64,000 nt of DNA, taken from Thalia democratica. Its lineage: Eukaryota. The first letter of the stretch is position 1, and each line of letters opens with the position of its first letter. A program made the translations under genes and the position numbers. A model generated the notes under the pieces. It made no database searches. It was not told where the DNA came from and saw only the letters and a program-made list of their open reading frames with translations. The DNA is taken from assembly GCA_965202585.1 (NCBI GenBank), contig OZ241827.1, forward strand, positions 12,028,001 through 12,092,000, written 5' to 3'. Below are positions 1,730 to 31,806 of the stretch, one piece after another.

Positions 1730-1774
<45 letters not shown>

Positions 1775-6371: not shown

Positions 6372-6599
6372 ATTTAAGTTTATTATTATGCTTCTGTTAT
6401 TTTTAATTTGATGTCATTTATACGTAAACTATTGAGTTTAGTTAGCAAAAAAGAAATTAAATAAGACTTACTCCTAGTATTTTATATCCACAATGAATAC
6501 ATATTTGTAAGAAATGTCTGAGCTAATACACACCTACTGTGCTCTTATTAGTCCTTACCAAGTATTATTGTTGTGTAAACATAAGAAGTGTTTTTAGAA

Positions 6600-8580: not shown

Positions 8581-11500
8581 CTTGAATTGGATATGTTTTA
8601 TCAAAAATTTTTAATTAACATAATAAAACCTAGAAATTTTATTTAACATTCATCAAAGTTAGTGAAATTAAAAAATTGTAATTGTGGTGAAAACAATAGT
8701 AGCCTATTGATAATAATTAAGCTACTACAAACTGTAAATTCTTTAAATTGTTTTTATAGAATCAAAATGTTTAGTAGAAAAACTATTTTAAAACGGCTTT
8801 TAAGTTATGAAACTTTAGTTACGGCCTAGCACTACTTAGATTTAAATAAGATTATATTTATCAAGCTCTAAATTTAGTTAATCTATACTTTATTACAAAC
8901 TAATAAAAGCTAATTCCTCGCATGAGTTCAATTTTATTATTATTATTAATATCAATTATTAATTATTTTTATAATTAGTAAACATAAATTTACAACAAAA
9001 TAATTTTTAAGCATCATAAACCAGAGTAACAAAATTTTATAATGTATCATTTATTAATACAAACTATTAGGTCAACGTAAAAGTCAAAGATAAAAGTTTT
9101 TTAAATATAAGGAACATTTTAAACAGTTTTTAAACTGCTTATTGCCAACTGTCGTTATTCAAAAGAAAGAAAATTATATAATAGATTGATTAATTCAACT
9201 GAATTTTGTATCAAATTAACTTTATTATAACATATCATACCTATGTGTGAAATAACAGTTAATAATATACTTGCACGCTTTTCAAAGCTATTTAAAGATT
9301 TATGATAAGTATGTTATAAACTGTATAATTTTATGAAAAATATAATCAAATTAAGTTAAAAGATTAAGTTATAATACTTTGTTAATTTCCTTGTTAATCG
9401 CGTTAGTTAATTAAATTAACATATTTTAAGACTGTAAATTTAGTACCCTTTTCTAAATTAAAATGAATTTTAAATTTAACCTCAGTTTTTGTATTTTAAC
9501 TATTATATTTAATTACTAGTTGTTAAATTTCTTTGAAAAACGTAGTAAAAATTGAAATTTTTAGTTTTAGTAAAGTGAATTTTTATTTTTAGGTAGTTAA
9601 AATTTTCAGTTAAATCTTCATTGGCAACTCTATCATGATGTTTTTAACATAATAAAGATTACATATAAAATATCAAAATATACTTTCAAATCTGTTTTAA
9701 TAACTTGATTCCGTAAAATTTAAAATGTTGTTGTTATTCTTTCTTATAAGCATGTTATGTTATGAAAATACATTTTCGTAGGTTTATTTAGAATTGTAGA
9801 TAATAATCAACTAAGTTTTTGATCGTTTAATTACAACTTTATAAACAAACTTCTCGTTTTTTAGTAACAATTTTGAATAGAGTTTAGTTCTTCTTTAAAA
9901 GTAGAACCTACGAAGAATGTTTTTTTAATAATTTTACCCCGCCAGTAATTTTTAAATTATGAAATAATATCTAGTTTATACTAGTTTGAACTGATTTTAA
10001 ATAGAGAGGTTAGCTAAATAGTTAAGTTTTTCTTAATTTGATTACTTAGTTACTTAATTTAATTAATAACACTTAAGTACTTAAAGACTTAGGTACTTAA
10101 ATAATGAGTTTTCTTAGGAGAAATAACTGAAAGGCGTAATCATTTTAGAATTAATATTTTAAAGCTATAAACTAAAATTGTAATACTTTTTAAAAATAAT
10201 GCTACCCGATTAATTCTATCTAAATAATAATTTTGCATACATATGAGCAATTTTTTTAACATTATATTTTGATTTCTAAGTGTTAATAAATTTATTCTAC
10301 AATAATAGGAAACAAAATGATTAAATAACCATACTGTTTTTCAAAGTTTATATAGTTTTTTTGTAATTTTGTTTAGTTATAACAGATAGGCTAACTCATT
10401 CTAGTTTGAAGTATTTTGAAAACTCAGAATAATTCAGTCTTGTTTCTGATGTTTAAATATATAGGATAACTTAAGCAAGCTTATCACTTGATAATTTAAT
10501 CAAAAAAATAGATTTCTATTGATTTGAAAAAACTTATTTAGATACTTTTAAAGTTAATCAAATATTTTAAAAATTAATTAAAAAAAACTTAAGATGACTT
10601 AGTTTCACATCATCTTTCCAGAAGTTAGTTAGTTAAAAAGTACAAGAGTTTATTCATCACAGTTGTAAAGAAAGATGGTATTTTTCCAAATAAAGATAAT
10701 TCAATATTTTATTCAGTTGTAATATAAGAAATCAAAAAGACATTTTAACAATTCAAATTCTAATATATATATATTCAATTTGCTTTAAAAAATCATATAA
10801 TAGTTACCCATTTCATTTTAAAAAGTCTAAAACCAATTGTTTTAGTGTTTTCTCATGATTTTTTCTCAATTTTTTATTTGTTTTTTGTAAGGTGTTTCCA
10901 AAGTTTGTAGGGTATGGATTGTGGTACACTTAATTTATTGACCCTCCCCGTTTTAATTAACCCTACGTTATCAAAATACTTAGAAATACTAGATGTTATT
11001 TTAGCTACTTTACATAAATCAGAAAAGACTATTTTAGTAATTTATCTTTAATAAAATGAACCACTAAAAATTATTAAAAAAAAAAAAGTTAATTTTTTAA
11101 ATAAATTAGAATAAATAAAACTTTATAATAATTTGAGTTTAAAAATAATTTACAGGTTACATTTAGAACTATAAAATATTAGATAACTTTTAAACAATTT
11201 AGTATGGCCGAATAAAAACTTATAATACTTGAATAATAAACATACAAAAAAAATAACATGCAGTTCTAAAAATTGTCTAATAGTAACTTTGAGCAGTACC
11301 TCAATACTACCTCTAGGTCTTACCAACAACTATCCCAAAATAGTTAGAACATTGTCTTAAATACTTGTGTTCTGGTTGAATAATTTTGTGACAATCAATA
11401 TTACGACACTCAAAAACTTTAAAACAGGGGAAGATTAAATGATAAACGCGTGCCATTACAATTTAATTCGAATACATTTAATTTATAATTTTTTCCATGG

Positions 11501-11699
11501 ATTCAGACGAGACTATACAAATAATGAATATTAACTTAGAGTAAATTTGTAATATTCTAGACTAAAAATAGTCCATTAGTATTTAAAACTTTATTTTAAA
11601 CACTATTAAGTTCTTAAAAACTTCTTCAATAAAAAAAAACATACTTAAAAAAAAATAACAGTTTACTTGCGTTTTGTTATAACACTAAGTAAAATCTAA

Positions 11700-12595
11700 G
11701 GAGTCACATAATTTTGAATACAAAATATAAGATACAATAATAACACCTCGTCAAAGAAGTATAAATTTATACAATTTAATTTATCAGCGTTATAGGAGGT
11801 CTGAATTAATTAGTTTATAATTAAACGATCAATTGTTCTATAGTGCTTTGAACACATTTTACATTTTTTTTAATAAATAATAAACTGTTTTAAACTGTTT
11901 TATATGGAACTTATTAACTAACAATTTCACTGTACACTGCAACAATACAGTACAATGAACAAACAGTTTGTCTGTTTCAAATTAAAATGTCATGCTTGAT
12001 TGATTGTATAATTACTTTTCAGTAATAAATTCACAACTATGGTATGTGTAATGAAAATATTTAAGATTTTTATTCAAATTTGTCTAAAACCTGTCCACAG
12101 GTAATAATTTGCTTAAACAAAACAAAAGATTTAAATAAATTAAATCCTGATTACTTACATTTATAGTGTTTGTTTAGGTTGATTTGAAATAGTAGAACAA
12201 CTTCATATACTTGCAGTTCTAAACCAATACGCTTGAGAAAGTTTTTGGTGAAAACTATTAAAATTAAGGTTATGTTTAAGCTAATAATGTACCAGGCTTT
12301 CCCATAGTTAGCCGTTTCAGAAATTTTTGTGGCTATAGGCTGCAAAGGGGTAAAAAGGGGGTCGTGAGTAGTTATTCGAGAAATTCTCGGGGTAGTAGGC
12401 CGCAAAGGGGATCGTGGGTAGTAAAGGAGTCTCAACGGGACCATCATAATTCAAATCGTTCATTTGACATTCTGAAGTTTACAGTAAACCGCTAAAAAAA
12501 TATTTAAATGTAATATTAAAACTTGTACTAGAAAATCAGAGTTGATGGTGAAGGGCAAAAAAATGTTTTCTGAGTATTAATCGCCAGTCTTTTAA
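11700..12595. repeat. ~0.9-kb unit, copy 1 (direct copy at ~13067-13925, inverted copy at ~16670-17490, diverged homolog at ~41385-42405)
   Basis: Shared motifs CAGCGTTATA and GTACCAGGCTT...TAGGCTGCAAAGGGGTAAAAAGGGG in the main copies. Confidence 0.8.
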
Positions 12596-13066
12596 CTTTA
12601 TAATTAATGTGTATATTTTTTTATTTTTACTTGAACATGTTAATACTTGAGTTAAACCGTGCCAAAGACTTTTTAAGATAAAATTTTTTAAGTATGTATT
12701 TTTTTAATTTTTATACAATTATCTATTTAAACTTTTGACCTTCTTTATAAGCTCTTTTTTGACCGAAAAGTGACCGAAAGTAAAATGACTTTTAATAAGT
12801 TCAAAAGTAAATTTAAAATAAAAATGACCTTTTAAAGTTCAAAACTTAAGCTATTTTAAATAAATGAATTATATAATTAATATAAATTTATATTAATTAT
12901 AAAAATACAAAAAGTAGCTGTTCATTGTTTTATGTGGTTTTGAGATTACGGAGAATGGTAATGTTAATTTTTAAATAGAATTCACAAACTTATATTTTTT
13001 TATGAATCAGTTCAATAGCATTTATATGTTATTTGCATTTAATAATGAAATTAAACGAAATCAAGG

Positions 13067-13925: not shown

Positions 13926-16900
13926 TTTTGAAAAATTGTACTTTCCTACTTGCGCTGGTTTAGAAATTTAGGGGACCAAAAGCTGCAAAAAGAGATGGGG
14001 CCATAAGTCCATTAATTAAAACTTACACCAGATTTTCTTTAGTTGAAATGAAGAGCATAAAATTGAGGTCTTAGGCGTATTTGATATTTGTATTTAAGAG
14101 AGGCCATAGCTTATTTTGTTTCGTTTGCTTTTGAAAAAAAATTTATACAATAGGTTTTAAGGATAAACTAAGTTCTAAAAAAAGTGTATAATAAGGTTAA
14201 AAACCACGACTAAACTAAAAATAATTACTCAAACTTTTTATATGAAGTATCCTTAAAAATTAAGCCAACCATTTTGTAATTTTAGTTTATAGTTGTCTCT
14301 ATCATTTATGTGTAACTTATAACAAGAAAACAAACAAAATAATTGTATAATAGTCATACAACTGATATGTAGAAACAACTTTAACAGAAATCGTTTAACA
14401 CACTATTATAAAATTAAAATGTTTTTTTATTAAAAAAAAGCCTTTAAAACATTGCAAACTTAAATTTCACAAAGAAAAATAAATAATAAATATTCATATA
14501 TAATTTTTTTTATTTTTTAACTCAGATTAATTTAATATGTGAAATAAACAGTATTTGAAATTTTGCAAAGTTTAATGATATTCAAGCCTAACTGCTAGTA
14601 AAAAACTTTTAAAATTTTGAATGTTGTGGTTTATTTCTAAAAAAATTATAAACTTTACTTATTTAGCTTTAATATCTAAGTAAATGGACATATATATATA
14701 TATATTAATTTATTTTTAAATTTCAAATTTATTGAGAAAAATTATGTAAAAAGACTCTAAAATAACAAGATCACTTAAGTATTAAAACAAATTTCAACTG
14801 TATCATTTTAAATTTGTTAATAGAACTTTAAACCTAAGATTGGTTAAAATTTTTAAGTATTAAAGTATATTAATTTAATTCAATTTGATTACAATAGATT
14901 TTAAAAATATAATTCTAACTGAAATAATTAAAACACTGTGGGTAACATATTTTTCTAAAACAAAAGCAGTAATAATAAATTTAATAAAATACTTTCTGTA
15001 ATCAATTTAAAATATCTGTAATTGAAGCAATTTAACCCAGTACAATTTAAATATCTAACAATTCCAACAAAGTTAATAAACATATTTTAAACAGTTTGTA
15101 ATTAATCTTAGTTAAATAGTACACTGTTGTCAATTAAATATTTAGAATAAAGCAAAAAAACACAACTTAGTGTTAACTACTACATTTTTTCAAGTAAAAA
15201 ATATTCTTACTATTAATTATTTATGTAAATTAACATTAAACTACAGCTTATCAGAATTTTATAAAGAAATTTTTAACTTTTTTATTGGATTTCTTTATTT
15301 TTTTAACATTTTCAATTTTCTGCAAAGAAATTTTTTCTAGAAAATAGTTTACTAATACTTTTTATTTTTGTATAAACTCAGACTGTCTTCTTTAAGTATT
15401 TTTTTAAGTAGCTTAAAATAAAAATAAACTTTCCATAGTTTTTAATTTTTTAAAGAACAACTTAAAAATCTTAAGGAAAAAGAGAATTTTATAAATAGGA
15501 AATGCTGTCTGTAACAGTTATGCTTACTTGATTATTTTTATACTAAAATTAACTATGCAAGTTCTTTTTTAGATAAAATGTTTAAAGATTTAATTTTCAA
15601 ATTTTTAAACAGTACTTATCTATTTAAACTTTTAACCTTCTTTATAAGCTGTTTTTTGACCAAAAAGTGACCGAAAGTAAAATGACATTTTATAAGTTCA
15701 AAAAAAATTAAGATTTAAAATGACCTTTTAAAGTTCAAAAATTAAGTTATTTTAATAAATGTTTGAAAATTTTTTAAAACTTTTCATTTTTTAAATTATG
15801 TTCAAAAATTCCAAAAATCATTTAAATAAGCTTTTACAATTTTCTAACATAAACCATTTTTTTAAAACATCTAATTTTAACCAAGGGATGAATAACACAT
15901 AACCATTAACTTTTAGTCACCTAGCACTTTGTTAAAAGTATCTCGATTCTCGACTAGTATTTGTTTTATAATCAGATATCTTTCTTATATACTATTAAAA
16001 TTTAAAGTATTTCAACAAAAATTTAATTGCAAAATTTGTCTAAATTATTTGTGAGTAAGAAGTGTAGCTAGTCTAATTACTTTTATGATAGTTTTATATT
16101 TTACCGTTATGTTTATGTATAATCCTAAATAAAAACTATTTGTCATTCGGTGAGATAACTTATCTATATAAATCAAACTTAATTTTAATTAAATTATTTT
16201 TTAAACGAAATGATTTTTTGAATTAATTTTATTCTTAATTTTATGTATCATTTTGTTTAAGTGGGCTAGGTATTGATGCCTGGGTCCATCGTATTGACAA
16301 TAAATTTGCAATTAAAGTAAACGAGGAAACAAAACATTTTATTACAAATTTTAGTCCTTACTATCATCTATAGATGCAATTTATAAGCTTTTAGTTTCTT
16401 CTGATAAAAGATGAAAGTAGGACTAATTTTTGTAAAAAATATTTTCTTTGCTCGATTACTCAAATTAGAATTAAAAAGAATTTCGATTAAATTAGAAGGT
16501 CAAAAAAGAGCTTATAAAGAAGGTCAAAAGTTTAAATAGATAATTGTATAAAAATTAAAAAAATACATACTTAAAAAAATTTATCTTAAAAAGTCTTTGG
16601 CACGGTTTAACTCAAGTATTAACATGTTCAAGTAAAAATAAAAAAAATATACACATTAATTATAAAGTTAAAAGACTGGCGATTAATACTCAGAAAACAT
16701 TTTTTGCCCTTCACCATCAACTCTGATTTTCTAGTACAAGTTTTAATATTACATTTAAATATTTTTTTAGCGGTTTACTGTAAACTTCAGAATGTCAAAT
16801 GAATACTTTGAGTTATGATGGCCCCGTTGAGACTCCTTTACTTCCCAGGATCCCCTTTGCGGCCTATAGCCACAAAAATTTCTGGAACAGCTATCTATGG

Positions 16901-19900
16901 GAAAGCCTGGTACATTATTAGCTTAAAAATAACCTTAATTTTAATAGTTTTCACTAAAAACTTTCTCAAGCGTATTGGTTTAGAACTGCAAGTATATGAA
17001 GTTATTCTACTATTTTAAATCAACCTACACAACAACTATAAATGTAAGTAATCAGCATTTAATTTATTTAAATATTTTGTTTTGTTTAAGCAAATTATTA
17101 CCTGTGGACAGGTTTTAGACAAATTTTAATAAAAATCTTGAATAATTTCATTACACATACCATAGTTGTGAATTTATTAATGAAAAGTTATTATACAATC
17201 AATCAAGCATGGCATTTTAAATTGAAACAGACAAACTGTTTGTACATTGAACTGTATTGTTGCAGTGTACAGTAAAGTTTTTCAGTTTATAAGTTCCATA
17301 TAAAACAGTTTAAAACAGTTTATTATTTATTAAAAAAAAATATGTAAAATGTGGTCAAAGCATTCTAGTACAATTAATCGTTTAATTTTAAACTAATTAA
17401 TTTAGACCTCCTATAACTCTGATAAATTAAATTGTATAAATTTATACTTCTTTTATAAGGTGTTATTTTTGTTTCTTATATTTTGTATTCAAAAATTTGT
17501 GACTTCTTAGATTTTATTTAGTGTTATAACAAAACGCAAGTAAATTGTTGATTTTTTTTAATGAAGAAGTTTTTAAGAACTTAATAGTGTTTAAAATAAA
17601 GTTTTAAATACTAAAATACTATTTTTAGTCTAAAATATTACTAGTTTACTCTAAATTAATATTTATTATTCGTATAGCCTCGTCTGAATCATTTAATCTT
17701 CCCCTGTTCTAAAGTTGTTGAAAGTCGTAATATTGAATGTAACAAAATTATTCAACCGGAACACAAGTATTTAAGACATGTTATAACTATTTTGGGACTA
17801 TTCTTGGTAAGACCTAGAGCTTGTATTAAGGTATTGCTAAAAGCTACTATTAGACACTTTTTAGAACTGCATGTTGTTTGTTTTTGTATGCTTGTTATTT
17901 AAGTATTAAAAGTTTTTATTTGGCCATAATAAATTGTTTAAAATTTCTTTCAATATTTTATAGTTAACATTATTTAAAGTTTTACAGTATTTTACTTTTA
18001 AACATAAACTATTATAAAGTTTTTTTTATTCTAATTTATTCAAAAAATTAACTTATATTTTGTTAACAAAACATTGAAATTCCATGGTTCTTTTTATTAA
18101 AGATAAATCACTAAAATAGTATTCTCTGATTTATATAAAGTAGCTAAACTATCATCTAGCATTTCTAAGTATTTTGATAACGTAGGGTTAATTAAAACCA
18201 GGAGGGTCAATAATGTAAGTGTACCACAATCCATACCCTACAAACTTTGGAAACACCTTACAAAAAATAAATAAAAAATTGAGAAAAAATCTTGATAAAG
18301 CACTAAAACAGTTGGTTTTAGACTTTTTAAATGAAATCGGTAATTATTATATGAATTTTAAAAGCAAATAGAATAAATATATGACAATTTGAATTGTTAA
18401 AATGTCTTTTTAATTTTTTTATTACAACTGAAAATAATATTAAAATATCTGTATTTAGAAAAATACCATATTTCTTTACAACTGTGATGAATAAACTCTT
18501 GTACTTTTTAACTAACTAACTTCTGGAAAGATAATGTGAAACTAAGTCATCTTAAATTTTTTTTAATTAATTTTTAAAATATTTGATTAACTTTAAAAGT
18601 ATCTAAATAAGTTTTTTCAAATCAACAGAAATCTATTTTTTGATTAAATTATCAACAGATAAGCTTGCTTAAGTTATCCTATATATTTAAACATCACAAA
18701 CTAGACTGAATTATTTTGAGTTTTCAAAATACTTCAAACTAGAATGAGTTAGCATATCTGTTATAATGAAACAAAATTACAATAAACTATATCAACTTTG
18801 AAAAACAGTATGTTTCTGTAATCATTTTGTTTCCTATTTTTATAGAATAATTTTATTTATATTTAAAAAATAAAATATATTGTTGATAAAATTGCTTATA
18901 TAAAAGCTAAACTATTATTTATATAGAATGAATCAGGTAGCATGGTTTTTAAAAGTTATTTAATTTTAGTTTATAGCTTTAAAATATTAATTCCAAAATA
19001 ATTACGCCTTTCAGTTATTTCTCCTAAGAAAACTCATTATTTAAGTACCTAAGTCTTTAAGTACTTAAGTGTTATTAATAAAATTAAGTAACTAAGTAAT
19101 CAAATTAAGAAAAACTTAATCTATTTAGCTAACCTCTCTATTTAAAATCAGTTCAAACTAGTATAACCTAGATATCATTTTGAAATTTTAAAATTACTGG
19201 CTGGGTAAAATTATTAAAAAAACATTCTTCGTAGGTTCTACTTTTAAAGAAGAACTAAACTCTATTCAAAATTGTTACTAAAAAACGAGAAGTTTGTTTA
19301 TAAAGTTGTAATTAAACGATCAAAAACTTAGTTGATTATTATCTACAATTCTAAATAAACCTACGAAAATGTATTTTCATAACATAACATGCTTATTAGA
19401 AAGAACAACAACAACATTTTAAATTTTACGGAATCAAGTTATTAAAACAGATTTGAAAGTATATTTTGATATTTTATATGTAATCTTTATTATGTTAAAA
19501 ACATCATGATAGAGTTGCCAATGAAGATTTAACTGAAAATTTTAACTACCTAAAAATAAAAATGTACCTTTATTAAACTAAAAATTTCAATTTTTACTAC
19601 GTTTTTCAAAGAAATTAAACAACTAGTAATTAAATATAATAGTTAAAATACAAAAACTTAGGTTAAATTTAAAACTCATTTTAATTTAGAAAAGGGTACT
19701 AAATTTACAGTCTTAAAATTTGTTAATTTAATTAACTAACGCGATTAACAAAGAAATTAACAAAGTATTATAACTTAATCTTTTAACTTACTTTGATTAT
19801 ATTTTTCATAAAATTATACAGTTTATAACATACTTATAATAAATCTTTAAATAGCTTTGAAAAGCGTGCAAGTATATTGTTAACTGTTATTTCACACATA

Positions 19901-21055
19901 GGTATGATATGTTATAATAAAGTTAATTTGATACAAAATTCAGTTAAATTAATCAATCTATTATATAATTTTCTTTCTTTAAAAAAAACGACAGTTGGCA
20001 ATAAGCAGTTTAAAAACTGTTTAAAATGTTCCTTATATTTAAAAAACTTTTATCTTTGACTTTTACGTTGACCTAATAGTTTGTATTAAAAAATGATACA
20101 TTATAAAATTTTGTTACTCTGGTTTATGATGCTTAAAAATTATTTTGTTGTAAATTTATGTTTACTAATTATAAAAATAAAATTGTTTGCTTTATCTTTC
20201 CTGTTAAGATCTCAATATTTTTGTAAAACTAAATCTTTTAATTATGTTTAGTTGTTTGAACTCATGCGAGGAATTAGCTTTTATTAGTTTGTAATAAAAT
20301 ATAGATTAACTAAAATTAGAGCTTGATAAATATAATCTTATTTAAATCTAAGTAGTGCTATGCCGTAACTAAAGTTTCATAACTTAAAAGCCGTTTTAAA
20401 ATATTTTTTCTACTGAACATTTGGTTTTATAAAAACCATTTAAAGAATTTACAGTTTGTAGTAGCTTAATTATTATCAATAGGCTACTATTGTTTTCACC
20501 CCAATTTTTTTAATTTCACTAATTTTGATGCATGTTAAATAAAATTTCTAGGTTTTATTATATTAATTAAAAATTTTTGATAAAACATATCCAATTCAAG
20601 GTTGTTCCAGTTAAATTTTACGATGATTTTTTAATTTTTGAAAATGATTTAGCAAATTTTTTCAAAGCTTTTGTTAATTGGTAGTTTAATTATAGCCTTT
20701 TTCGTAACCAACCTAACCTAAACTTATAAAAAATTTAATTTTAAAAAATTTGATAAGAAATACAATTTATTATTTTTTGCTGATTCAACTTTTTTAGATC
20801 TAACTGAGTTTGACGTAAACTAGCGATGATTTTTATACTTGTCATTACGTTTTTCATACTTGAATATATACACTGTCACATAACATACATAGAGATATTA
20901 GTGGTTATTTATAAAATTATATAAAACCGAGAAAAAAATTCGAAATATTTTACTTAATAAATTATTTAATTTTAAGAACGTTAGTTTTAAATACAAATAA
21001 AATTAACAAAAGGGTTGATCATGCCAATTCGATCATCAGACCACAAGTTTCGGTA

Positions 21056-21098
21056 GACTGAGACCGGTTTCGTCCTTATTAGGACTCATCAGTCAGTC
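21056..21098 (-). ncRNA. Minimal type I hammerhead ribozyme
   Basis: Minus strand GACUGA-CUGAUGA-GUCCU AAUA AGGAC-GAAA-C CG G-UC-UCAGUC. Stem I GACUGA/UCAGUC (extendable to 21044-21114), complete core, stem II, minimal palindromic stem III ACCGGU, and a GUC cleavage triplet (cut between 21062 and 21061). Confidence 0.9.
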
Positions 21099-21239
21099 AC
21101 AACCGAAAAACTTGTAGTCGTCAATCTACAAACAGTTTATGATGCTTTCGCATAAAGCAACCATTTGCTGGCAATGATTAGTGACGTCAGTATTGTCTTT
21201 GCCGTGCAACGTTTAAAGCATTGTCCACTAGGCAAGACA

Positions 21240-21715
21240 TCTGGTACGCTCGTTCTGCAGACTTTCGCCGTTCTGCATCGTTCTGGTAAGCTCGTTCTGC
21301 ATCGGATCTGGTAAGCTCGTTCTGCATCGATCTGGTAAGCTCGTTCTGCATCGATCTGGTAAGCTCGTTCTGCATCGATCTGGTAAGCTCGTTCTGCATC
21401 GATCTGGTAAGCTCGTTCTGCATCGGATCTGGTAAGCTCGTTCTGCATCGTTCTGGTAAGCTCGTTCTGCATCGATCTGGTAAGCTCGTTCTGCATCGAT
21501 CTGGTAAGCTCGTTCTGCATCGATCTGGTAAGCTCGTTCTGCATCGGATCTGGTAAGCTCGTTCTGCATCGTTCTGGTAAGCTCGTTCTGCATCGTTCTG
21601 GTAAGCTCGTTCTGCATCGTTCTGGTAAGCTCGTTCTGCATCGATCTGGTAAGCTCGTTCTGCATCGATCTGGTAAGCTCGTTCTGCATCGATCTGGTAA
21701 GCTCGTTCTGCATCG
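21240..21715. repeat. 24-bp minisatellite (GATCTGGTAAGCTCGTTCTGCATC)n, about 18 units
   Basis: Tandem units with GTTCTGG/GATCTGG variants and occasional 25-nt units. This explains the three repetitive ORFs in the track. Confidence 0.95.
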
Positions 21716-23555
21716 GACTTGTTCTGCTGACTTTCGCCGATTTTGTTGATTGACAAATAAAATTAGAGTTAAATTTGAAGTTGCAAGGTAAAAGTTGTGT
21801 TGGTTTACAATAAAACATTAAGAGTTAATTGATTTTGTTCCAAAATCATAAAAATAATGTACGAACCTAGAATTTAGAACAATTTTTATTTTTCAAAGAA
21901 AAAATTGTAAAAAGTACGAAATATATGAAAAAAAAATTATAAAAAACTTAAAATTTTTATCAACACATTTATATAAAAATTAGAGCATCATTTTCGCACT
22001 TTTAATTTTTTTAATATTTGCTTAATTTTATTTGAAATTTAAATTATAAAAAAAAACTTAATTAAAAAGGCGAAAAGAAAGTAAAATATTTTATAAAAAA
22101 CTAAAAATAAATAGCATTAATGTGTTTTAAAGGAAGATAATTGATAAAAAGATTATGTTAGGAGTGCCTCCTCAGAATTTGTTAGCTAGACATTTTTATA
22201 ACCTTAAAGGAGAAATGCATTTAAGTAGCAACTCCTAGATAACTTATAATAAGCTTAAACACATCTTACAAACTTAAGTACATCACGAGCAACATAGTAC
22301 CTTAATTGTGTTTTATTAATTATTTAGTTTTATTCATTTATCGACACTTAACCTAAGACCAACTAACTTTAGAACATTTAATTTTTATTCTTCTAAGAAC
22401 CAATTCCAGGTTTTCGAGTTATTTTTTTGTGATTTTTTTAAATTTAAAGGTTATATATAAAAAAATGAATTGCTTATCTAATGATTTCTTAAAATTATAT
22501 TCACAAGTCAGTCTTAGCTGAAAAAACGTTGAAAATAATAATGATTTAGCAGCCTTTTTAAAGCTTTTGTTGATAAGTAGTTTATTGATAGCCTTCTCCC
22601 TATCCAACCTAACCGAAACATATCAAAAATTAAAGTTAAAAAAATAAGATAAGAAACAAATTTATTACGTTTTGCTGATTCAACTTTTTTGGTCCGACTG
22701 AATTTGAAGTAAACTAGCGATGATTTTTTTACTCTTTATTACGTTTTTCACACTTGTATAGTATGTTGTGTCTTATAACATACATAGAGATATTAGTTGT
22801 TTTTTATTAAACTTGTACAAAACGAGAAAAAATATTCAAAATGTTATGCTTAAGAAGTTATTTCATTTTAAAGACGGTAGTTTTAAAAACAAAATAAATT
22901 CAGAGTTAGATTTTAAGTTGCAATGTTAAAAGTTGTGTTGGTTTACAATAAAACATTTAGAGTCAATAAATTTTGTTCCAAAGTCATTAAAATAATGTAC
23001 AAACCTAGTATTTAGAATATTTTTTATTTTTCAAACGAAAAAAATTGTATAAACTACGAAATAGATAAACAAAAAAGATATATAAAACTTAGAATTTTTG
23101 TTAATACATATATAACAAACTTAGAACTAATTTATAATAGGAAAATATTTGGTAAAATTATTATGTTAGGAGTGCCTCCTAAGAATTTTATTACTAAATA
23201 TTTGTGTAATCTGAAAGGAGAAATGCTTTAGATAACAACTCATAGATTACTTATAATAAGCTTAAACATATCTCACAAATTTAACCTTATCATATAATAC
23301 CTTAACTATGTTTTATTAATATTTTAGTTATAACATTTTAAGAACACTTAATGGTTTACACAACAATAATACTTGGTAACGACTAACAATAGCACAATAG
23401 TAAGCTTACACACTTCTTACAAATATGTATTCATTGTGGATAAAAAATACTAGGAGTATGTCTTATTTTATTTCTTTTTTGCTAACTAAACTCCTTAGTT
23501 TACATATAACTGACACCAAATTATAAATATCAGAAGCATAATAATAAACTTAAAT

Positions 23556-26500
23556 ATGGATTACAAACTTGAATCAATCAAAAAAGAAATAATTCCTAGA
23601 ATGCTCCTTCACGCAATGAGCCGGCCATTTCATGATCCTGCTGATCCGATTGCGCAAGATAGACAGGTAAGTTTCTGTGGAGTATTTAAATAGTAATTAG
23701 TTAATGATTTTGAATATTCATAAAAATTTGTACCGATAAATAATATTCTTGTTTTTTGTTAATTTTAAGTATATTCTAGTTCTCTAAAAAAACGACTATT
23801 TTGTCAAACCAATGTAAATAACTGCCTACATAATAATAAGAATCATTGCATGTAAGGTTTTAACGATGATTTGATTAATTTTTAAGTTTGACTCCTTAAA
23901 GTCAATTTAAAACTGGCATTATATTACTGTATAACAACTTAGAGCACCTGTTTGTGTTTTATTCTTTTAAATTTAACTTGTACTTTTTATCTTAGTTGAT
24001 TTTAAAAAACTTGTGATAACAATATAATTTTCAATTCAAACTTCATAAAGCTAATTAATAATTGATGATATTATATCAAGATAACAAACAAAAATGAACA
24101 AACAATAACCATTACAGTTTACATGTTTAAAATAGTATACTTTGAAAATAGTCATAAGTTTTGCCGACTTTTTATTTATAGTTTTGGTTTTAACTTGTTG
24201 TAAGTGTTCTTTTTTAAAATTTTTACGTATATTTAATTTTAAGAACTGCATATAGATCAAGATAGGTGGTATTAATAACTAAAAATTACACTATAAAATA
24301 TCACCTAATATAGTAATAAATGTTTTACAGGACTACTTTAAAGTCATCAAAAAGCCAATGTGCATAGGAGATATAAAGAAAAAACTGGACAGCAACATGT
24401 ACAAAACTGCTGACGAATGTTTAGCAGATTTTGAATTGATGTTCAAAAACTCTTACGAGTACATTTCTGTAAGTTTTTTTTTTTGTTCCTAGGAAATAAT
24501 ATAGCTCATTAATAAAACCAATGTATAATAATACAAAAATAACTAAGTGTTGCTTCTTGTTTTCTATAGACTTAATACATATTACTTGATTATTCGATGT
24601 TGAAACATACGTTCTACAATTAAATTTTTTTTTTCTTTATTAAAAATATGTTAAAAACTTCACACCTAATGTTAAAAAACAGCCCGGATACAAAATAGTC
24701 GATATGGCTCTTGAACTTCAAGAATATTTAATGACACAACTTAGTGAGCTGGTATCAAAAGAAGAGAGTAGAAGTAAATGCAGCTCCACAGAAGTGAGAA
24801 TTTATAATTTTAATTCTATAGTTAATATTATATATTTAATGCCAATAATAAGATTTAAAAGAACTGTAAACAATGTGTTATATTTTTATTTATGTTATAA
24901 AACCATTTTTTTTTTTGAAATTAAATACTAAATAGTTATGCTTCAACTTATTTTTGGAATACTTTGCTTAAATTAAAAAAAATGCTTATTACAGTAAAAT
25001 CCAAACTTAACATGTTTCAAGTAAGGAAAACATAATTATACTATATTTTATAAACATCAAAACAATTTTTGTAACTTTTATATTTCTTTAGACAAACCAA
25101 AAAACACCAATTGCAAAACTTGATTCGTCAGATGAAAAATTTTTGCCGAAAACAAAAAATAAAACAAGGTTAGTTTTTTATTATATGACAGATTTTAAAT
25201 AAATGTTGCTATATAAAAAAATATAAACTACGAGTTCTCTAAAGCTTTAAATCTAGTTATTCAAATTACTTCTAAAAAGTAAAGTTTATGTTGAAACAAA
25301 TGTACAATTTATAGACTAAAGCCATTTCATTTGATAAATATAGTTTGTGTTTATTTTTACAGATAAACATTTTTACGTCCATAATATGTTTAAATTTTAT
25401 TGCTTGCAAGTTTTAATATTTTTATATTTATTTTTGAAAATTATTTCCACGAAAAATCTTTACAGCCACTTAGAGATACCTAGAATACGACCAAAAAGGT
25501 CTATCGCTGCTACAAAAAGTTATTTTGAAGAAGATATCGAATCTGATGAAAGTAATTGTGACAAAGGTCAACAGAAAGTACCGCCATTGAAAATCAGAAA
25601 GAAAAACAAAAACGTTTTAGACGTAGGAAAGGTAAGTTTTCTTATCAAAAGCTATATTCATGAATATAGAGTTGTTGTTGTTTGTACAATCAAACATTCA
25701 ACAAAAGTATCTTTCATCTTTTGTTCTAGGTTGAACACATAGAATATTATATAAATGTTCTAGATAAGTTATATAAAAAAGTAATATGTTTATTGCTTTT
25801 TACTAAAAATTTGTATAGATTAATCAAAAAACTTCTGCACAAAATGACTTAGTTAGTTCAAAAGCAAAATTAAACCACAAAAAAAAAACAGAGTCGTGAA
25901 GTAGATTTAAACGCTTCCAGTAGTCAAACTCTTCACTCTCAAAACAAAACAACCAGACCAATCAAAAAAGAAACTAAAAAGTATCATAACGTCGTCAACA
26001 AAAAATCTGCAAACTGTAAGTTTTGTTCCTGTTATCAATAATTTAAAGAAATAACAATTTATTATTAACAGGAACAAACATCAGAATTTAAATTTAATTG
26101 TTAGTCAACAAGAAATGTCAGTAAAATTATTTAAACATATTGTTTTTTATTTTAGACTCTTCAGCTCAAAAGCAAGCAAGAAAAAGTTTGTACAACAAGA
26201 ACCATAGAAAACTTGAAAGATTTAAGAAGAACTACATGAGATCGAAAAATATATCGCACAGTTCAAAAAGGTAAGGATTTTTAACAGACTAACCAATTAT
26301 TCTACTTTATTTATAAATTTAAACTATAAATCTAACTTTTTTGTTAAGTTTTATAAGCTCCGTTTATAAGTCAAACAAATATAAACTCATCTGTACGTTT
26401 AGTAAGTTCACACTTTTGTCATGTTTGTATGTAAAACCATAGTTGATTTATATAGTTTGTATTCGTAGACGGTTTAATTCTAGTTAATATGGTTTTATAA

Positions 26501-29500
26501 TGGTTTTAGATGAGCATATATGATTTTTTAATGATTTAAATATTCTAACAAGCGAGTTTATTTATTGGACCCTGTTTGTTTTTTGATAACATTGTATATA
26601 AGTTTTTTAGAAATTATAAATACTAGATTTTTTTATTTAACTTGTTAACTAATTTGTTATCAGTGTAAATACAAGCAATCAATTGACTTATTACTGATTT
26701 AGTAGTAAATCTATTTTAAATGTAGTAAGACATATTATTTATGTAAAACTAAAAAAATTATATTTCATTAACAACGGATGTTCAATGATGTAGACACATG
26801 TTAATAAAATCAAAAGTCATGTTTCACAATTATGTATAATTTAATTATCAAAATACTTAAGATTGAAAATAAAAAAATAAATTTATAGCCAATACAAAAA
26901 TCATATTTTTTGACTAGAATAATCATAAATTTATTAAAGAAAAAAAAGCTACTTTAACAGTTAGAGAACGTTAAGGTTTTTACTAGGTGCATAGACATGA
27001 AAACGTAACTCATATACAACGAACTTTGTTAAACTCACAAAAATATGTAATATTTATTTTTTAATTTAATATTAATTGAACACAACTTTAAGTTAGCACA
27101 ATTTAAAAAAATAATCAGCTTAGTTTTAATAAATACACTCATTAGACATTATTTACATGTATCTTCTAACTTAGCTATGTTCTAAGTGAAATGTTTTTTA
27201 TATATTTTTTGTTGATTTAAAACAAAACAGAACTTCAGACAAAATGATCAACAGAAAAAATTCAAGCGAGAATGCTTTAATAAAAAAAAAGAGTACAATA
27301 ATTGGAAATAAGAGAGTAAGTCCTCATTACTTACAGCACAAACCGCATAACAGAATAAATAAAGTGGACACGGATAGAAATGTGCAAAATATTAATCAAC
27401 TTCAAAAGTGAGTTTAAGCTTGTAAAAATAATATTTTTGGAAACTCTGTAAAGCTTTTAAACTACTTTAGGTCATTTTTATTTATTTACTTATTTTTCTA
27501 CTTATTAAACAAACTAGCTCTTTACAGTTGATAGAGTTTGGTAGAGTAGAATTGTATTTTTGATAAAAAAAATTATCTGCCTGTTAAAAGCAAGGTTTAT
27601 TTTTCCACTCTTTTCATCGAAATAAAGCTATTTTGATCCGTTTAAAGCTGTTCTATGGCAATTTAAATCATTTCGATTCAAATTTAAAAAATGTTCAGGA
27701 TAATTTATAAAAAGTTACTGATTATTTATTATGCTAGCTTTCTTTATTATTCTTCAGTAGTTTAAGTTTAAGAACTCGACCTTTTTGACGTTTTTTGCTT
27801 TGCAATTAACCTAATAAAACTCATAAAAGTTTATAGTAATTAGCTTTTAAATTAACGGTAATTAAACACAACTTAAAGTTGCCACATTCCTAACAAAAAA
27901 TAACCAGCTTGGTTTTAGTAAAGATACTCATTAGACACTATTCGAATGTATCTACTAACTTAGCTATGTTCTAAGTGACAAGCTTTTTCCATATTTCTGA
28001 TTAATTATAACAAAACAGAACGTCTAATCTTCCAAAAGTGCCTAATAGCAATGAAAAAACCACTTTGGGATTTGCACTTGCTGTTTTACCAGAAAACTGG
28101 ACTGATGGAAATGAAGCAAATAAGGAAACGCTTTTAAAAGAGTTACCCCGCAACGATGAAGAGACTGAAAAGGTAGATAAAGTTATTTTTGTAAATTTAG
28201 TTTAGATTTGAAAAATGGATGCGAATAATTTTACTCGATAGTTTAAGCATTAAATAAAGAGTACAGTTAATATATATATATATATAGCACCCAATACTAA
28301 AAAAACTATACAGTAGTTAATACAGTGAAGTTATTCTTTGCATTGTTACAACATTAGAGCTTAGTTTTTAAAGTATTGTACTATAAAAGAAAAGTATTTA
28401 TTGTCAACTTTAAAAATTTTATTCTAATTTCATATTAAACAATTTAAGAAACAATTGTTCTATAAACTTGAAAAAATTTAGGTTCCTTAAATAATAATAA
28501 TTTAATTTTTGTTATTTTAGCATCATTAAAAAAACCTTGATAAAATCAGATCTCGAAATTTATTATTTTCAATTTTAAAACTCACTTTTTTTATTTCTAT
28601 AAAACTTCATATAATTGTAATAAACAACCATATAAAATATTACGTATAACAAAACATATTTATGCATTTTAAATCCGTAAAATTTCTAAACAGGTGTGCG
28701 ATAAACATGTGAAAGATATCAAAGAAGTAAAAGCGAGCAAAATCAATGCAACAAATTTTAAACGTATGTTTCAATTATTCAAATAACTTAACTTAGTCAA
28801 TTCCATTTTTAACAAAGTAGATAGCACACCTTAATCCAAAAATGAATGATAAATTAATAATTTTATTATAAGTACATTACGTCTATAAAAAATAAATAAA
28901 CTCAGCAAAAACGTAACCTTAAATATATTTTAGAACAAACGACCTCCATCTTTGATCAGGTCTTAGAAAGTCAAAAGAAAACCTTCGGAGATTGTACCAA
29001 GGGACAAAACACTAACAAAAGTGAAGAGCAAATCGTCAAGCAGAGCTTGGAGGGAAACGTTGCCAATGTACAATCTAATGATCACCTTTCAAAGTGAGTT
29101 AAAGATAAAACAAAGATTTGTTGTAGAACTTTATATAATTTTAAAATTTTTTTGAGCCTTTTTTTATCAGACTAATTTAGTAAACTAGTATTAATCAGTA
29201 AACTTTATTGGAAAAAAATTGTTAGATTTAATTTTAAGGCAAAAATAGTACGCTTTTTAAAAGCAAGGCTTATTATTTTATTATCTTTAACGAAATAAAG
29301 CTATTTGGGACCGTATAAGCTGTTCCATAGCAACTTAGCTCATTTTAAATTAAGTTAAGTACAGATTAATGATAATCTTTGAAAGTTACTGATCATTCAT
29401 CATCCTAATTTTCCTTATACTCTTTAGTAGTGTTAGTTTTATAACTCGACCTTTTAGACCTTTTTCTTATTATTTATCATTTCCAAATAAACTAATTAAA

Positions 29501-29691
29501 ACTATTAGTTAATTTTTTATATTTATACTTTTCATAGTGCAACACCACCAAGAATACAAGCAGAAAAGCAACGGTTGAAAGAAGAAGCTCATCGTAGAAG
29601 ACTTGCGCAACCAACATTCGATTTGCTGGAGCAAGCTAGATTAATGACTGATTTTGAAACGGAAAATTCATGTTTTTTTTTTAGTCTTTAA
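23556..29691 (+). CDS. BET/BRD4-derived protein, copy B: atypical BD1-like bromodomain, basic low-complexity middle, BRD4-CTD-like C-terminus (542 aa if one A-run is A9; as given it stops at 227 aa)
   Basis: GT-AG exons 23556-23666, 24331-24468, 24683-24793, 25092-25168, 25466-25631, 25819-26015, 26156-26270, 27231-27407, 28019-28172, 28694-28763, 28934-29093, 29538-29691. Phases are consistent except for one extra A in A10 at 25879-25888. SRPFHDPADPIAQDRQDYFKVIKKPMCIGDIKKKLDSNMYKTADECLADFELMFKNSYEYISPGYKIVDMALELQE aligns with BET BD1. The end QRLKEEAHRRRLAQPTFDLLEQARLMTDFE resembles the BRD4 CTD. Confidence 0.82.
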
Positions 29692-31806
29692 TTTTCTTTT
29701 AGAGTTTGTTTAGAATTTCGTCTGCAAATAAATAGTACAACATTAGCATGACTTCTTATTTATTTCGTTTTCTTAATTTAAGGATAAAAACTTAACGTCA
29801 AAACTTTAACTATATACTGCTTCCAAAAGTTTGAATAACAAATTCTTTTTATAATTTTTTAAGTAATGATTTTTAAACTGAAAAAAAATATGGGCTTTTA
29901 AAATCGTATTTCAAAAAAACTAACTTATTTTTACTGATAAGCTTTAACTACAAAAAAAAATTTAGGACATTAGAAAAGTTTGCGGTTTTCGTTTATCTTA
30001 CTTTGATATTTTATTGAATGCTAAAAATAATAACTCGAAAACTAATTCTTTTAAATTAAAAAAAATAGTTGTCTACCGGCTCAAAAATCTTAGGATCTTG
30101 CCCGATTAGGATCCTAAATACTTGTCAAAATTTCTTTTTGGTTTCTAGTCTAAGATATTACAGTATTGTCAGATAGAGTACTTCTCACAAGTATGCTACT
30201 CAAAGCAACCCGTAAAGATCACTGCCCTGTTTAGAAAGTCAAGTTGTTTTAGTTATCTATCGATTCCGTTTCAAAAGGATGCGGCTGAATCTAAAATCGT
30301 TTTTAAAAAAAGGAACTAAAAAGGTCTGTCCCGACCCTCCGACATGTAAACTAGTCAATTTTTAATATATTGCATTATAATTGAAGTTTTAGAAGATGAA
30401 AACAATTTTCTCATTATAAAGTCAAATGTAAAAAATAGTAAAAAAGGCAGATTCGGTTCGCAAGCAAAGCAACTTTTTTATTATCAAATTCAAAAATACC
30501 GAGATTTAAAAAAAAAAACTGATAGTTTGTTTTTTTATTAACAGATTATAGTTTTACCTGAGTAAAGTGTGAATAAATATAATTAAAATTCCTAAAAAAG
30601 TAAAATGTAGTAACATTTTTAGGTCGTTTAGTTTATGCTACTAGATACTAACCTGTATGATATGTTTTTAACTAGGAAATTAAAATACCATGTAAAAAGA
30701 TAAAACTATTTAGACAAGGGGTCGGTAGCCTTATGTAACTCACAGGCCAACTTTCCTAGGAACAATTGCTTGCGGGCCACACTATTTAGAAAAAAAACCT
30801 TTGAGGGCCGCATTAATAAAAAAAGTTCTAGTATTAACAAGCAAAATAATATTAAGATCAAAACTATGGTATATTAAGCAATATAAGAGCACTAGCACTA
30901 ATAAAGAGTAGTAATTTATCTAAGAGTCTAACTGTAAATTTTTATTACAAGTCTCAAACTGTTTATTTATTTATGAAATGTATATTTCTGACTGAAAAAG
31001 AGTTCGCAGGCCGCAGATTTTAACTTTAAGGGCTGCATTTAGCCCGCGGGCCGAAGTTTGCCTACCCCTAATTTAGCCGTTTGTAAACTTGTGGATTTCA
31101 ATAAAATTCCTTGAACTGATACAGTAACTGTTTTTTGAAACTTAATTGAAATCATCTTAAACATTTTTAAAAAATAGTAGCAAAATTAAAACCTAAGTAA
31201 CATTAACTAAAAAATCATAAATTTACAACAAAAATAAACCTTAAAGTATTACTATGATTAGGATGGTTTTAAAAGTTGAGCCCTTTTACCTTTCAGCTGT
31301 AAGGCAATTTATAAGTAGGAAATATCATGAAAACAATCTGTGGAAATTTTAAGATGTTTTAAACAAGAGTCAATTGAGACGTCATCAGTTTTAACCTATA
31401 TAACAATCCCTATGTAAGCTGAATGGGACCTTAAAATTTTGACCTTGTTCGATTAAGATTTTTTAGAATTTTAAGAATTACGACAAAAAACCTTCTAACT
31501 ATAATAAATACTTTAAAGATACTACAAAATAGTTTTTTAACCAAAATAGTTTATATGTTTTTTAACCTTAAAACATAAGTTAATGAGTGTTTGCAGTCAC
31601 CGTAAAGTATCTATTTGTCATTTAAATGTCAAGTTTTGTGACTTATTTTGCATAGCATTAAAATCAATAATATGTTTTATTCGTATAGTGAACTATAAAA
31701 AATCATTGATTGTAAATTATACTGAAAAAGTTATGTAAAAAATAAATGACAGGTTTTTTAAATAAAAATGATTATAAATTGTTTACTTAACAATAGAAAG
31801 GTGCTC
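28308..31806 (+). repeat. Source copy of a recent direct segmental duplication (other copy 60500-64000)
   Basis: Near-identical sequence at an offset of about 32.19 kb, continuing to the window end. Confidence 0.95.
30716..31070. mobile_element. hAT-type MITE
   Basis: Termini AAGGGGTCGGTAGCC and GTTTGCCTACCCCTA; 8-bp TSD ATTTAGAC/ATTTAGCC; GCCCGCGGGCC subterminal motifs. Confidence 0.75.

Follow-up and report, generated by a model that had tools for sequence, protein, structure and literature searches.

BET proteins link acetylated chromatin to the release of paused RNA polymerase II via P-TEFb, and to our knowledge every natural BET member with a P-TEFb tail also has two reading bromodomains and an ET domain. 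The long-isoform members, namely the BRD4 long isoform, BRDT-L and Drosophila Fs(1)h-L, are proteins of about 1000-1400 aa from genes present in one to four copies. Binding of P-TEFb by BRD4 needs its last 34 aa (PMC5133849), and a polybasic cluster together with a leucine motif (L-M...FE) is needed by Brd4 for P-TEFb activation (PMC4081074). In vitro, the isolated P-TEFb-interacting domain (PID) releases P-TEFb from inhibition by HEXIM1 (PMC4081074, PMC5133849). Such BRD4 PID fragments are laboratory constructs. Partial BET architectures are found in the testis-specific tBRD-1, tBRD-2 and tBRD-3 of Drosophila, lineage-specific and single-copy paralogues which have kept functional bromodomains and/or ET. 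We know of no report of a P-TEFb tail in these three proteins. tBRD-1 has two bromodomains and is without ET (PMC4345279, PMC4177214). Human atypical bromodomains, PHIP(2) being an example, keep the fold signature with the anchor Asn replaced (PMC5977933).

The gene described here, copy B, lies on the plus strand at positions 23556-29691 of the window, a 64,000-nucleotide stretch of contig OZ241827.1 from the marine planktonic animal Thalia democratica, and is a member of a family referred to here as mini-BET. It has 12 exons with GT-AG at every intron of the gene model and an open frame of 518 aa (coding sequence of 1557 nt without stop), and none of the 12 exons shows a frameshift, stop or lost splice site. 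The limits of this independently built model are exactly those proposed in the initial annotation. Like the BRD4 long isoform, BRDT-L and Fs(1)h-L, the mini-BETs have a BD1-type bromodomain and a terminal domain of about 35 residues with an arginine cluster, L-M and FE, and they stem from the canonical BET line of their own genome. However, they are without BD2, ET, a recognisable motif A/B or SEED and number more than 30 copies, and copy B has Asn140 replaced by Ile and Trp81 by Arg. They share with the tBRD proteins a lineage-specific, partial BET architecture, but this consists of BD1 plus tail, with the Asn lost in copy B and the gene amplified. As with the isolated PID fragments, the BET tail is apparently present without working chromatin tethering, as judged from sequence; here, however, it would be naturally encoded, amplified and attached to an N-terminal part of 470 aa.

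Exon 1 (23556..23666, aa 1-37) carries the ATG, which is kept in 29 of 30 paralogues, helix Z and, at 23622-23630, RPF in the position of the WPF shelf. The ATG is preceded at 22 nt by a CAG (23531..23533, plus strand), which is kept in all 16 copies inspected in the alignment of both subfamilies and is a possible (trans-)splice acceptor or initiator. Exon 2 (24331..24468, aa 38-83) contains the bromodomain core and alone matches the Pfam Bromodomain family PF00439 at 51.6 bits (E 9e-14, cut-off 21.7 bits), its best single-domain PDB relatives being BRD4 BD1. Within it are Tyr39 (24334-24336), the equivalent of the ZA-loop residue Tyr97 of BRD4, and Ile82 (ATT, 24463-24465), the equivalent of BRD4 Asn140. 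The exon ends with ...KNSYEYIS and is followed by exon 3 (24683..24793, aa 84-120), which begins PGYKIVDMA... and corresponds to the BC loop and helix C by gene model and residue alignment. Residues 4-110 of the spliced protein align with BET BD1 at E 6e-21, the 2-residue BD2 insertion is absent from the mini-BET bromodomains, and in a maximum likelihood (ML) tree these group with BD1 and apart from BD2 with support of 100/99. The lone bromodomain is thus of BET BD1 origin, as had been proposed.

The BC-loop Asn that hydrogen-bonds acetyl-lysine is Ile in copy B, and the same residue is found in all 25 close copies read, while the five sister-subfamily copies read all have Asn. The initial annotation had reported this replacement together with the RPF shelf of copy B (QPL in copy A) and the retained ZA-loop Tyr, and all of these are read in the sequence. 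Compared to BRD4 BD1, the pocket of copy B also has Trp81 changed to Arg, Val87 to Ala, Leu92 to Gln, Leu94 to Arg, Cys136 to Ser and Asp144/145 to Tyr/Lys, with the equivalents of Tyr97, Tyr139, Pro82, Phe83, Ile146 and Met149 kept. Asn140 and Trp81 are two of the four residues proven essential in BRD4 BD1 (PMC3979416). Loss of the key acetyl-lysine contacts is thereby supported, and copy B would probably not bind acetyl-lysine. In human atypical bromodomains the anchor is a polar Tyr, Thr or Asp which can bond via water, in contrast to the Ile of copy B, where further pocket residues are altered too; none of the human examples is a BET domain.

Exons 4 (25092..25168) and 5 (25466..25631) encode a linker, K/S-rich in the former and with basic clusters in the latter, where paralogues differ by in-frame 9- or 6-nt indels only. 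Exon 6 (25892..26015) has its acceptor after an A-run, and its AG/GT pair is also kept in copy A; an alternative acceptor at 25819 was rejected as the frame would hit a stop. The gene model continues with exon 7 (26156..26270) and exon 8 (27231..27407), the latter with an open frame in 19 Ile-type and six of seven Asn-type copies despite an identity of just 55-62% between the two subfamilies. Exons 9 (28019..28172), 10 (28694..28763) and 11 (28934..29093) form a block with entry and exit phase identical to that of exon 8. Exon 12 (29538..29691) includes the stop codon, and an AATAAA (29727..29732, plus strand) is read 36 nt past it. With the exception of exon 2 and the last exon, the exons of copy B have no Pfam matches.

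The last exon had been identified in the initial annotation as the BRD4/BRDT C-terminal motif. The core of this tail (29563-29667) reads EKQRLKEEAHRRRLAQPTFDLLEQARLMTDFETEN. Its match to BRD4_CDT (PF17105) is below the 27-bit cut-off (17.1 bits, E 0.0038); the canonical BET tail of the same genome, at 23.4 bits, also falls under this cut-off, and PF17105 is the sole family matched by the tails, in five of nine. The identification is upheld by hhalign, in which the family-tail profile matches 23 canonical BET C-termini over 34 columns (probability 94.6%, E 7e-8), and the tail of copy A matches the canonical BET CTD exon of its own genome by BLASTP (E 1e-6). The spliced copy B protein aligns with BET proteins at two places only, the BD1 position and the extreme C-termini, the tail HSPs stopping 3-5 residues short of the latter. 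The arginine cluster reads HRRR in copy B, whereas copy A and the Asn-type copies have RRRR, and R-L-M...F-E is invariant across family tails. With 76-78% identity between subfamilies, as opposed to about 62% for the bromodomain (hand count), the tail is the best-conserved segment. Unlike canonical BETs, it continues past the FE motif with ENSCFFFSL, an extension specific to the family, and it has RLK in place of the first basic motif RKR. By profile and sequence comparison the last exon is genuinely homologous to the BET C-terminal domain, and it may bind P-TEFb.

Both BD2 and ET are missing, as had been claimed. In the window no second bromodomain exon was found at E <= 1 other than exon 2 of copy A, nor was an ET domain (PF17035), and a whole-genome scan puts all ET exons elsewhere, on C6 and C7. 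No extra exons encoding either domain are therefore present in the window, and of the three domains of a BET protein in the strict sense copy B has BD1 and lacks BD2 and ET. Support from RNA was also sought for the gene. None of the RNA runs searched contains the copy B locus, and no contig on copy B exons was found in two low-depth, whole-plankton marine metatranscriptomes (X4 and X5); these contain the canonical BET gene with 13% of that locus's words. A search of 1.84 billion representative proteins gave 1,677 matches, and the best 150 of these included no spliced family protein, only exon fragments of 67-73 aa.

Copy B lies in the right arm (16498..30025) of a palindrome with arms of about 13 kb and a spacer of about 3.7 kb, the left arm (69..12764) being an inverted match to it at 80-95% identity. 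The left arm carries copy A (382..6379, minus strand), a pseudogene paralogue in which the 12 exons and AG/GT sites are recognisable. This has frameshifts in exon 2 (+1), exon 8 (-1/+1) and exon 9 (+1) and a stop in exon 5 (~4330-4332). The earlier statement that both copies share the Ile holds for the residue, as copy A also reads YEYIS, but its three frameshifted exons and stop disqualify it as a second intact gene. A truncated copy C (60879..61883, plus strand) consists of exons 10-12 only and sits in 60500-64000, a duplicate of 28308-31806 at 98.7% identity. Ampliconic gene families are found in palindromes on mammalian sex chromosomes. The mini-BETs resemble these in their near-identical head-to-head copies, arm-to-arm homology, mixture of intact and broken copies and omega near 1, although arm identity exceeds 99% in the mammalian palindromes. 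Genome-wide there are about 26 near-identical Ile copies, copy B among these, a sister subfamily of about seven copies with the Asn retained and more than 100 BET-like bromodomain exons. Copy B belongs to a large amplified family and is no isolated oddity.

Paralogues diverge by 0.17 in exons and 0.23 in introns. The exons have just two indels, of 9 and 6 nt, in comparison with about 33 indel events in introns, 29 of which are not multiples of 3, and the probability of an open frame after 104 neutral substitutions is 0.004. Since the frames are open at 17% divergence and the exon indels are in-frame, the family codes for protein, and by these sequence measures it is also fast-evolving. Exons of the Ile clade diverge at roughly half the rate of its introns (0.047 vs 0.084), and omega in this clade is 0.62 (p 0.03). 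The stem of the Ile subfamily in the ML tree is about four times longer than that of the Asn subfamily (0.40 vs 0.09). Omega on the bromodomain stem is about 1.3, with 47 nonsynonymous and eight synonymous changes, and is not different from 1 (p 0.6), a value compatible with relaxed constraint and equally with adaptation.

Copy B is best explained as an intact gene from an amplified, lineage-specific mini-BET family, likeliest a carrier of the P-TEFb tail that acts independently of acetylation, a reading to which we give about an even chance. In this explanation the family descends from a BET gene that retained BD1 together with the C-terminal P-TEFb-interacting domain (PID/CTD) and dropped BD2 and ET; it occupies palindromic and segmental amplicons, and its sequence changes rapidly while the reading frame is held open. 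The pocket was remodelled on the stem of the ~26-copy subfamily by the changes from Asn to Ile, Trp81Arg, Leu92Gln, Leu94Arg, Cys136Ser and Asp144/145 to Tyr/Lys. The domain architecture and homology, the altered residues, the copy number and the selection on the reading frame are shown by the sequences; we infer that copy B is expressed, no longer binds acetyl-lysine and binds P-TEFb. The product would be a putative nuclear protein which leaves acetyl-lysine unread while its BET tail remains available to P-TEFb (CDK9/cyclin T). P-TEFb might thereby be freed or activated away from acetylated chromatin, or become contested between this protein and the canonical BET protein. The recruiter or decoy roles put forward in the initial annotation are likewise candidate functions.

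It is possible, although in our view doubtful, that copy B is instead a silent young duplicate in a once functional family, with the Ile subfamily or copy B itself now decaying. Its palindrome partner is indeed a pseudogene, the RNA searches gave no transcript contig and roughly one in six paralogues is broken (4/25 Ile copies in exons 1-5 and about 3/25 in exons 10-12); a divergence of about 5% in Ile-clade exons is also too small to break most neutral copies, and the stem omega of ~1.3 would suit such a relic. However, the slower change of exons than introns and the omega of 0.62 within this clade argue against silence, as do the intact frame and splice sites in 12 of 12 copy B exons and the ATG, AG/GT sites and tail kept across subfamilies at 17-23% divergence. 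Adaptation may alternatively have driven the fast evolution, the more hydrophobic and basic pocket having been re-specialised for a new ligand, whether an acyl-lysine other than acetyl-lysine, an unmodified peptide or a protein of a virus or transposon. The long Ile stem with its excess of nonsynonymous changes, their concentration on the pocket lining around the retained residues, and the near invariance of Ile and the KNSYEYIS motif in 25 copies since the change are consistent with this, and the Asn is also missing from the human atypical bromodomains (PMC5977933). We nevertheless consider it unlikely, given a stem omega indistinguishable from 1 and the fact that Ile is used at this position by no known bromodomain, the 13 human atypical ones having Tyr, Thr or Asp (PMC5977933).

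A further alternative concerns the tail, which may serve a partner other than P-TEFb or be a basic nuclear-localisation plus acidic motif with no modulation of P-TEFb. The sub-threshold Pfam score, the ENSCFFFSL extension and the RKR to RLK change all point in this direction. Papillomavirus E2 also docks on the BRD4 C-terminal motif. Yet the two elements on which P-TEFb activation depends most (PMC4081074), the arginine cluster and the leucine motif, are invariant in the family and the extreme C-terminal position is kept, making this improbable and the last of the alternatives in our ranking. The amplicons could also have been left by a genetic conflict, in which rapidly evolving, palindrome-amplified BET mimics bearing the tail would act in the germline as dosage-dependent titrators of P-TEFb, like drive or suppressor genes, or as decoys for BET-docking viral or retroelement proteins. 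The mimics would then have been uncoupled from chromatin when one subfamily gave up reading acetyl-lysine; we regard this as distinctly unlikely, although a shade less so than a tail for another partner.

On the preferred reading of copy B as an acetylation-independent carrier of the P-TEFb tail, it would be unusual for a core transcription-elongation cofactor to be under ampliconic, near-neutral or adaptive evolution. Should the genes be silent, the locus would still show clearly how a gene in a palindromic amplicon loses domains, multiplies and decays. If naturally selected, a many-copy protein of BD1 plus tail, with sister subfamilies differing at the acetyl-lysine anchor, would be a ready natural experiment revealing the action of the tail once it is uncoupled from chromatin reading.

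The gene under study (copy B), a mini-BET composed of a BET first bromodomain (BD1) and the BET C-terminal tail, lies in AT-rich, eukaryotic sequence of approximately 25% GC, located at C2:12028001-12092000 within a genome of 802 Mb. The reading frames of 23400-29800 give a stop-free coding model of 1557 nt (518 aa) on the + strand with 12 exons, these being 23556-23666, 24331-24468, 24683-24793, 25092-25168, 25466-25631, 25892-26015, 26156-26270, 27231-27407, 28019-28172, 28694-28763, 28934-29093 and 29538-29691, the introns of which are all GT...AG and compatible in phase. The model begins and finishes at exactly the limits first assigned to the gene (23556-29691). There is an AATAAA 36 nt 3′ of the stop codon, and a CAG 22 nt 5′ of the ATG is kept in all copies inspected. 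For exon 6 a frameshift was considered, and a better-looking acceptor at 25819, which reads into TGA, was rejected; the acceptor chosen, 25890-25891, preserves the frame and has been conserved in the paralogue at 382-6379 (-), copy A. The introns around exon 8 are paralogous to those around the exon 9-11 block (27031-27236 with 27817-28024 and 27568-27795 with 29241-29465, 75-79%), and exon 8 and this block have identical entry and exit phases, with the joins of exon 7 to 9 and of exon 8 to 12 both in frame; exon 8 and exons 9-11 could be duplicated cassettes in alternative use. In the Asn subfamily, a sister group of copies discussed below, exon 12 is open and exons 10-11 are broken.

A Pfam scan of copy B, done exon by exon, gave 51.6 bits against the Bromodomain profile for exon 2 alone and no match in exons other than 2 and 12. 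The nearest single-domain PDB relatives of exon 2 are BRD4 BD1 chains, and a maximum likelihood tree of 23 BD1, 20 BD2 and 8 mini-BET domains bears out the proposed BD1 kinship: the mini-BET domains fall with BD1 at its split from BD2 (support 100/99), and their branch is very long, at 1.17 changes per site. The substitutions described in the initial annotation are also present: the anchor Asn is replaced by Ile (ATT at 24463-24465, exon 2 ending in KNSYEYIS and exon 3 starting with PG), copy A also reading YEYIS as had been stated for both copies, the WPF shelf is RPF in copy B (23622-23630) and the ZA-loop Tyr is retained (24334-24336). In BRD4 BD1 numbering the changes are Trp81Arg, Val87Ala, Leu92Gln, Leu94Arg, Cys136Ser, Asn140Ile, Asp144Tyr and Asp145Lys, while Pro82, Phe83, Tyr97, Tyr139, Ile146 and Met149 are retained. 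Binding of acetyl-histone and JQ1 depends most on four residues, Trp81, Tyr97, Asn140 and Met149 (PMC3979416), two of which copy B has lost, and human bromodomains without the Asn have Tyr, Thr or Asp there, never Ile (PMC5977933). With Asn140 and Trp81 replaced and Leu92 and Leu94 made polar, the bromodomain of copy B should not anchor acetyl-lysine. One Ile-type copy, at C5:79146607, has WPF in place of RPF, KPL or QPL. TGG differs from CGG or AGG by a single base, and copies are therefore polymorphic for the shelf Trp.

BD2 and ET are absent, as had been reported. The only other bromodomain exon in the window is exon 2 of copy A, on the opposite arm of a palindrome, and no ET is found in the window, the ET exons of the genome being located on contigs C6 and C7 only. 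For the last exon, homology to the BRD4/BRDT C-terminal motif is supported, with a match to the BRD4 C-terminal profile (PF17105, BRD4_CDT; 17.1 bits, E 0.0038) that is present in exon 12 but falls under the 27-bit cut-off. Five of nine family tails match this profile, with no other Pfam match among them, and the tail of the genome's own canonical BET gene reaches just 23.4 bits. The homology is accepted because three comparisons agree: hhalign of a profile of the nine family tails with 23 canonical BET C-termini (probability 94.6%, E 7e-8, 34 columns), BLASTP of the copy A tail with the canonical C-terminal domain exon of the same genome (E 1e-6, 42% identity), and alignment of spliced copy B with 152 bromodomain proteins, in which, outside the bromodomain, only residues 475-508 align, to the last ~35 residues of BET proteins. 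By BLASTP, copy B's own tail gave no match to the canonical exon (E 2.6). In the family tail, QRL.EEA.RRR.AQPTF.LLEQAR.M..FE.EN is invariant and takes in both the arginine cluster and a leucine-type motif; mutating these two elements abolishes P-TEFb activation by Brd4's P-TEFb-interacting domain (PID) (PMC4081074), and P-TEFb binding requires the last 34 residues of BRD4 (PMC5133849).

Copy B is one of many, and the finding is better seen as one about a family than about a single odd gene. The exon-2 peptide is found at 102 genomic places, including 25 at 89-100% identity (C2 11.3-12.1 Mb, C4 15.8-16.9 Mb, C5 77-79 Mb, with some on small scaffolds), seven at 77-82% (C4 97.4-97.7, 68.8 and 70.6 Mb), ~40 at 55-64% (C5 10.5-11.7 Mb) and further groups beyond these, as well as the canonical BET gene (C6 72.43-72.45 Mb). 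The tail peptide is found at 33 places, pairing with the 89-100% and 77-82% groups. A processed retrocopy was rejected as the source of the copies, introns being present in all of them and the open frames of the exon-2 matches all being of 112 aa or less. YEYIS was read in 25 of 25 close copies and in copy A, and EYN(P/H) in each of the five 77-82% copies that were read; the Asn-to-Ile change (AAT to ATT) is therefore a single event on the stem leading to the Ile subfamily and, on the copies read, defines one subfamily. The Ile stem is about four times the length of the Asn stem (0.40 vs 0.09, maximum likelihood). The Asn group retains Val87, Leu92, Ile94, Pro95 and Cys136 and has Gly at the position of Trp81. 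Between the subfamilies the tail is the best-kept protein segment (76-78%), the bromodomain being at ~62% by hand count.

The genome also contains other BET-derived loci. The ~40 BET-like bromodomain exons at C5 10.5-11.7 Mb, 55-64% identical to exon 2, with open frames of ~53 aa and a spacing of ~30-40 kb, form a second tandem expansion, an older one that lacks a matching tail exon. Three loci at C2:60813531-60913738 have a 50%-identical bromodomain exon and a tail-like motif (61-64%, residues 9-41) in frames of 183-200 aa and may be an older mini-BET lineage. At C6:72417205-72453555 the canonical BET gene (bromodomain, ET and C-terminal domain exons) is followed by two further loci with ET, one at 72.425 Mb and one at 72.418 Mb, an arrangement that resembles three BET-type genes in tandem. 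One 296-aa open frame at C7:11639168-11639947 contains three ET-domain matches in a row (47.7 to 61.1 bits); a triple-ET protein, if such a protein exists, would be an unusual BET derivative.

Copy A lies on the left arm (69-12764) and copy B on the right arm (16498-30025) of a palindrome with arms 80-95% identical and a spacer of ~3.7 kb. All 12 exons and splice sites of copy A are recognisable. Exon 2 carries a +1 indel, exon 5 a stop, exon 8 a −1 and a +1 indel and exon 9 a +1 indel, and copy A is a pseudogene. Copy C, which has exons 10-12 only (60879-61883), is located inside a 98.7% identical duplicate of 28308-31806. Five head-to-head pairs resembling A/B, with members 19-24 kb apart, were found on C2, and the palindrome itself has therefore been copied. 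Other features of the window include a Ty3/gypsy-type retrotransposon just upstream of copy C (54521-59412, +) with two long open frames of 450 and 1138 aa, the latter possessing protease, RT, RNase H and integrase domains. A tandem array of ~13 units of ~420 bp, 94-99% identical and with GC raised to 0.40-0.44 (43709-49116), is flanked by an inverted repeat of 963 bp at 98% identity (42744-43706 and 52465-53427). Overlapping open frames of 135-196 aa at 21137-21818 (-), in a GC-richer and internally repeated stretch, have a weak Cornifin/SPRR-like (Pro-rich repeat) Pfam match under the cut-off.

Whether copy B is a gene or debris was addressed with paralogue analyses covering exons 1-5 (30 copies) and exons 10-12 (30 copies). 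Across exons 1-5, copy B differs from the Asn copies at 17% of exon sites and 23% of intron sites, with just two exon indels (9 and 6 nt) against ~33 indel events in 1.35 kb of intron, 29 of which are not multiples of three. In simulations with the intron substitution spectrum, the 201-codon frame stays open after 104 substitutions in 0.4% of trials. Exons 1-5 are open in 21 of 25 Ile copies and in all five Asn copies, exons 10-12 in ~22 of 25 Ile copies, and exon 8 in 19 Ile copies and six of seven Asn copies despite only 55-62% identity between the groups; broken copies make up roughly one sixth. Within the Ile clade, exons diverge at about half the rate of introns (0.047 vs 0.084) and omega is 0.62 (p 0.03); the value within the Asn clade was left out as the root fell inside that clade, and dN/dS of the tail alone (50 codons) was too noisy, with ratios from 0.5 to 2.2. 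Judged from these comparisons, the protein has been kept translatable, with selection for the open frame, and this is consistent with a functional extreme C-terminus, which would require translatability. On the stem between the subfamilies, the bromodomain has 47 nonsynonymous and 8 synonymous changes (omega 1.3, indistinguishable from 1), and our reading is that bromodomain and linker were free to change, or driven to change. A 955 bp contig of ENA ERZ17084750 (L072) has the Ile, introns nearer the Asn subfamily (~9% mismatch) and exons nearer copy B (4%), a mosaic that is due either to gene conversion between subfamilies or to chimeric assembly; it was left out of the analysis as possibly chimeric at 3x coverage.

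The initial annotation had looked to RNA-seq junctions for support, and no transcripts were found in the RNA runs, none of which contains at least 5% of the locus words, or in the marine metatranscriptome runs X4 and X5, which are shallow whole-plankton samples. Compared at 90% likeness with 23620-29619, X4 and X5 had contigs on none of the exons and just spurious intron matches of ~20 nt; of the control, 3 kb from the canonical BET gene, they contain 13% of the words, as expected for its exons. Missing transcripts in samples of this depth lower confidence in the gene but do not refute it. Among DNA runs, X1 and X2 span the stretch completely, and none of the 40 differences listed for them (129 more exist) is at the Ile codon. 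A Tara Oceans contig (PRJEB4352) is 98% identical across exon and intron, which marks the source as a marine planktonic animal, and the tail had no match in JGI metagenomes. Among the best 150 of 1,677 phmmer matches of exon 2 to 1.84 billion representative proteins there is no spliced family protein; multi-bromodomain proteins dominate the top, and the only family matches are exon fragments of 67-73 aa (P0023, P0152).

Without BD2 and ET, the mini-BET is BET-derived but fails the definition of a BET protein. Among natural precedents for a partial BET paralogue, tBRD-1, -2 and -3, proteins of the Drosophila testis, come nearest (PMC4345279, PMC4177214); unlike the mini-BET, they retain other BET parts and are single-copy. 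A limited full-text literature search found no description of a BD1-plus-tail protein, of a BET bromodomain whose anchor residue is Ile or of a BET expansion of comparable size.

We regard the domain architecture, the altered residues, the homology at both ends, the amplification and the selection for an open frame as established. With its arginine cluster and with L-M and FE at the C-terminus, the tail should still contact P-TEFb, and the action of the copy B protein would take place away from acetylated chromatin. By analogy with isolated PID fragments, which free P-TEFb from HEXIM/7SK in vitro (PMC4081074), it could free P-TEFb from HEXIM/7SK, or else it could compete with full-length BET for P-TEFb. 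The initial annotation's observations are confirmed and its interpretation is supported in part, the role as a P-TEFb recruiter or decoy being one that we infer. The Asn subfamily, which may still read acetyl-lysine, is the natural comparison for the Ile subfamily.
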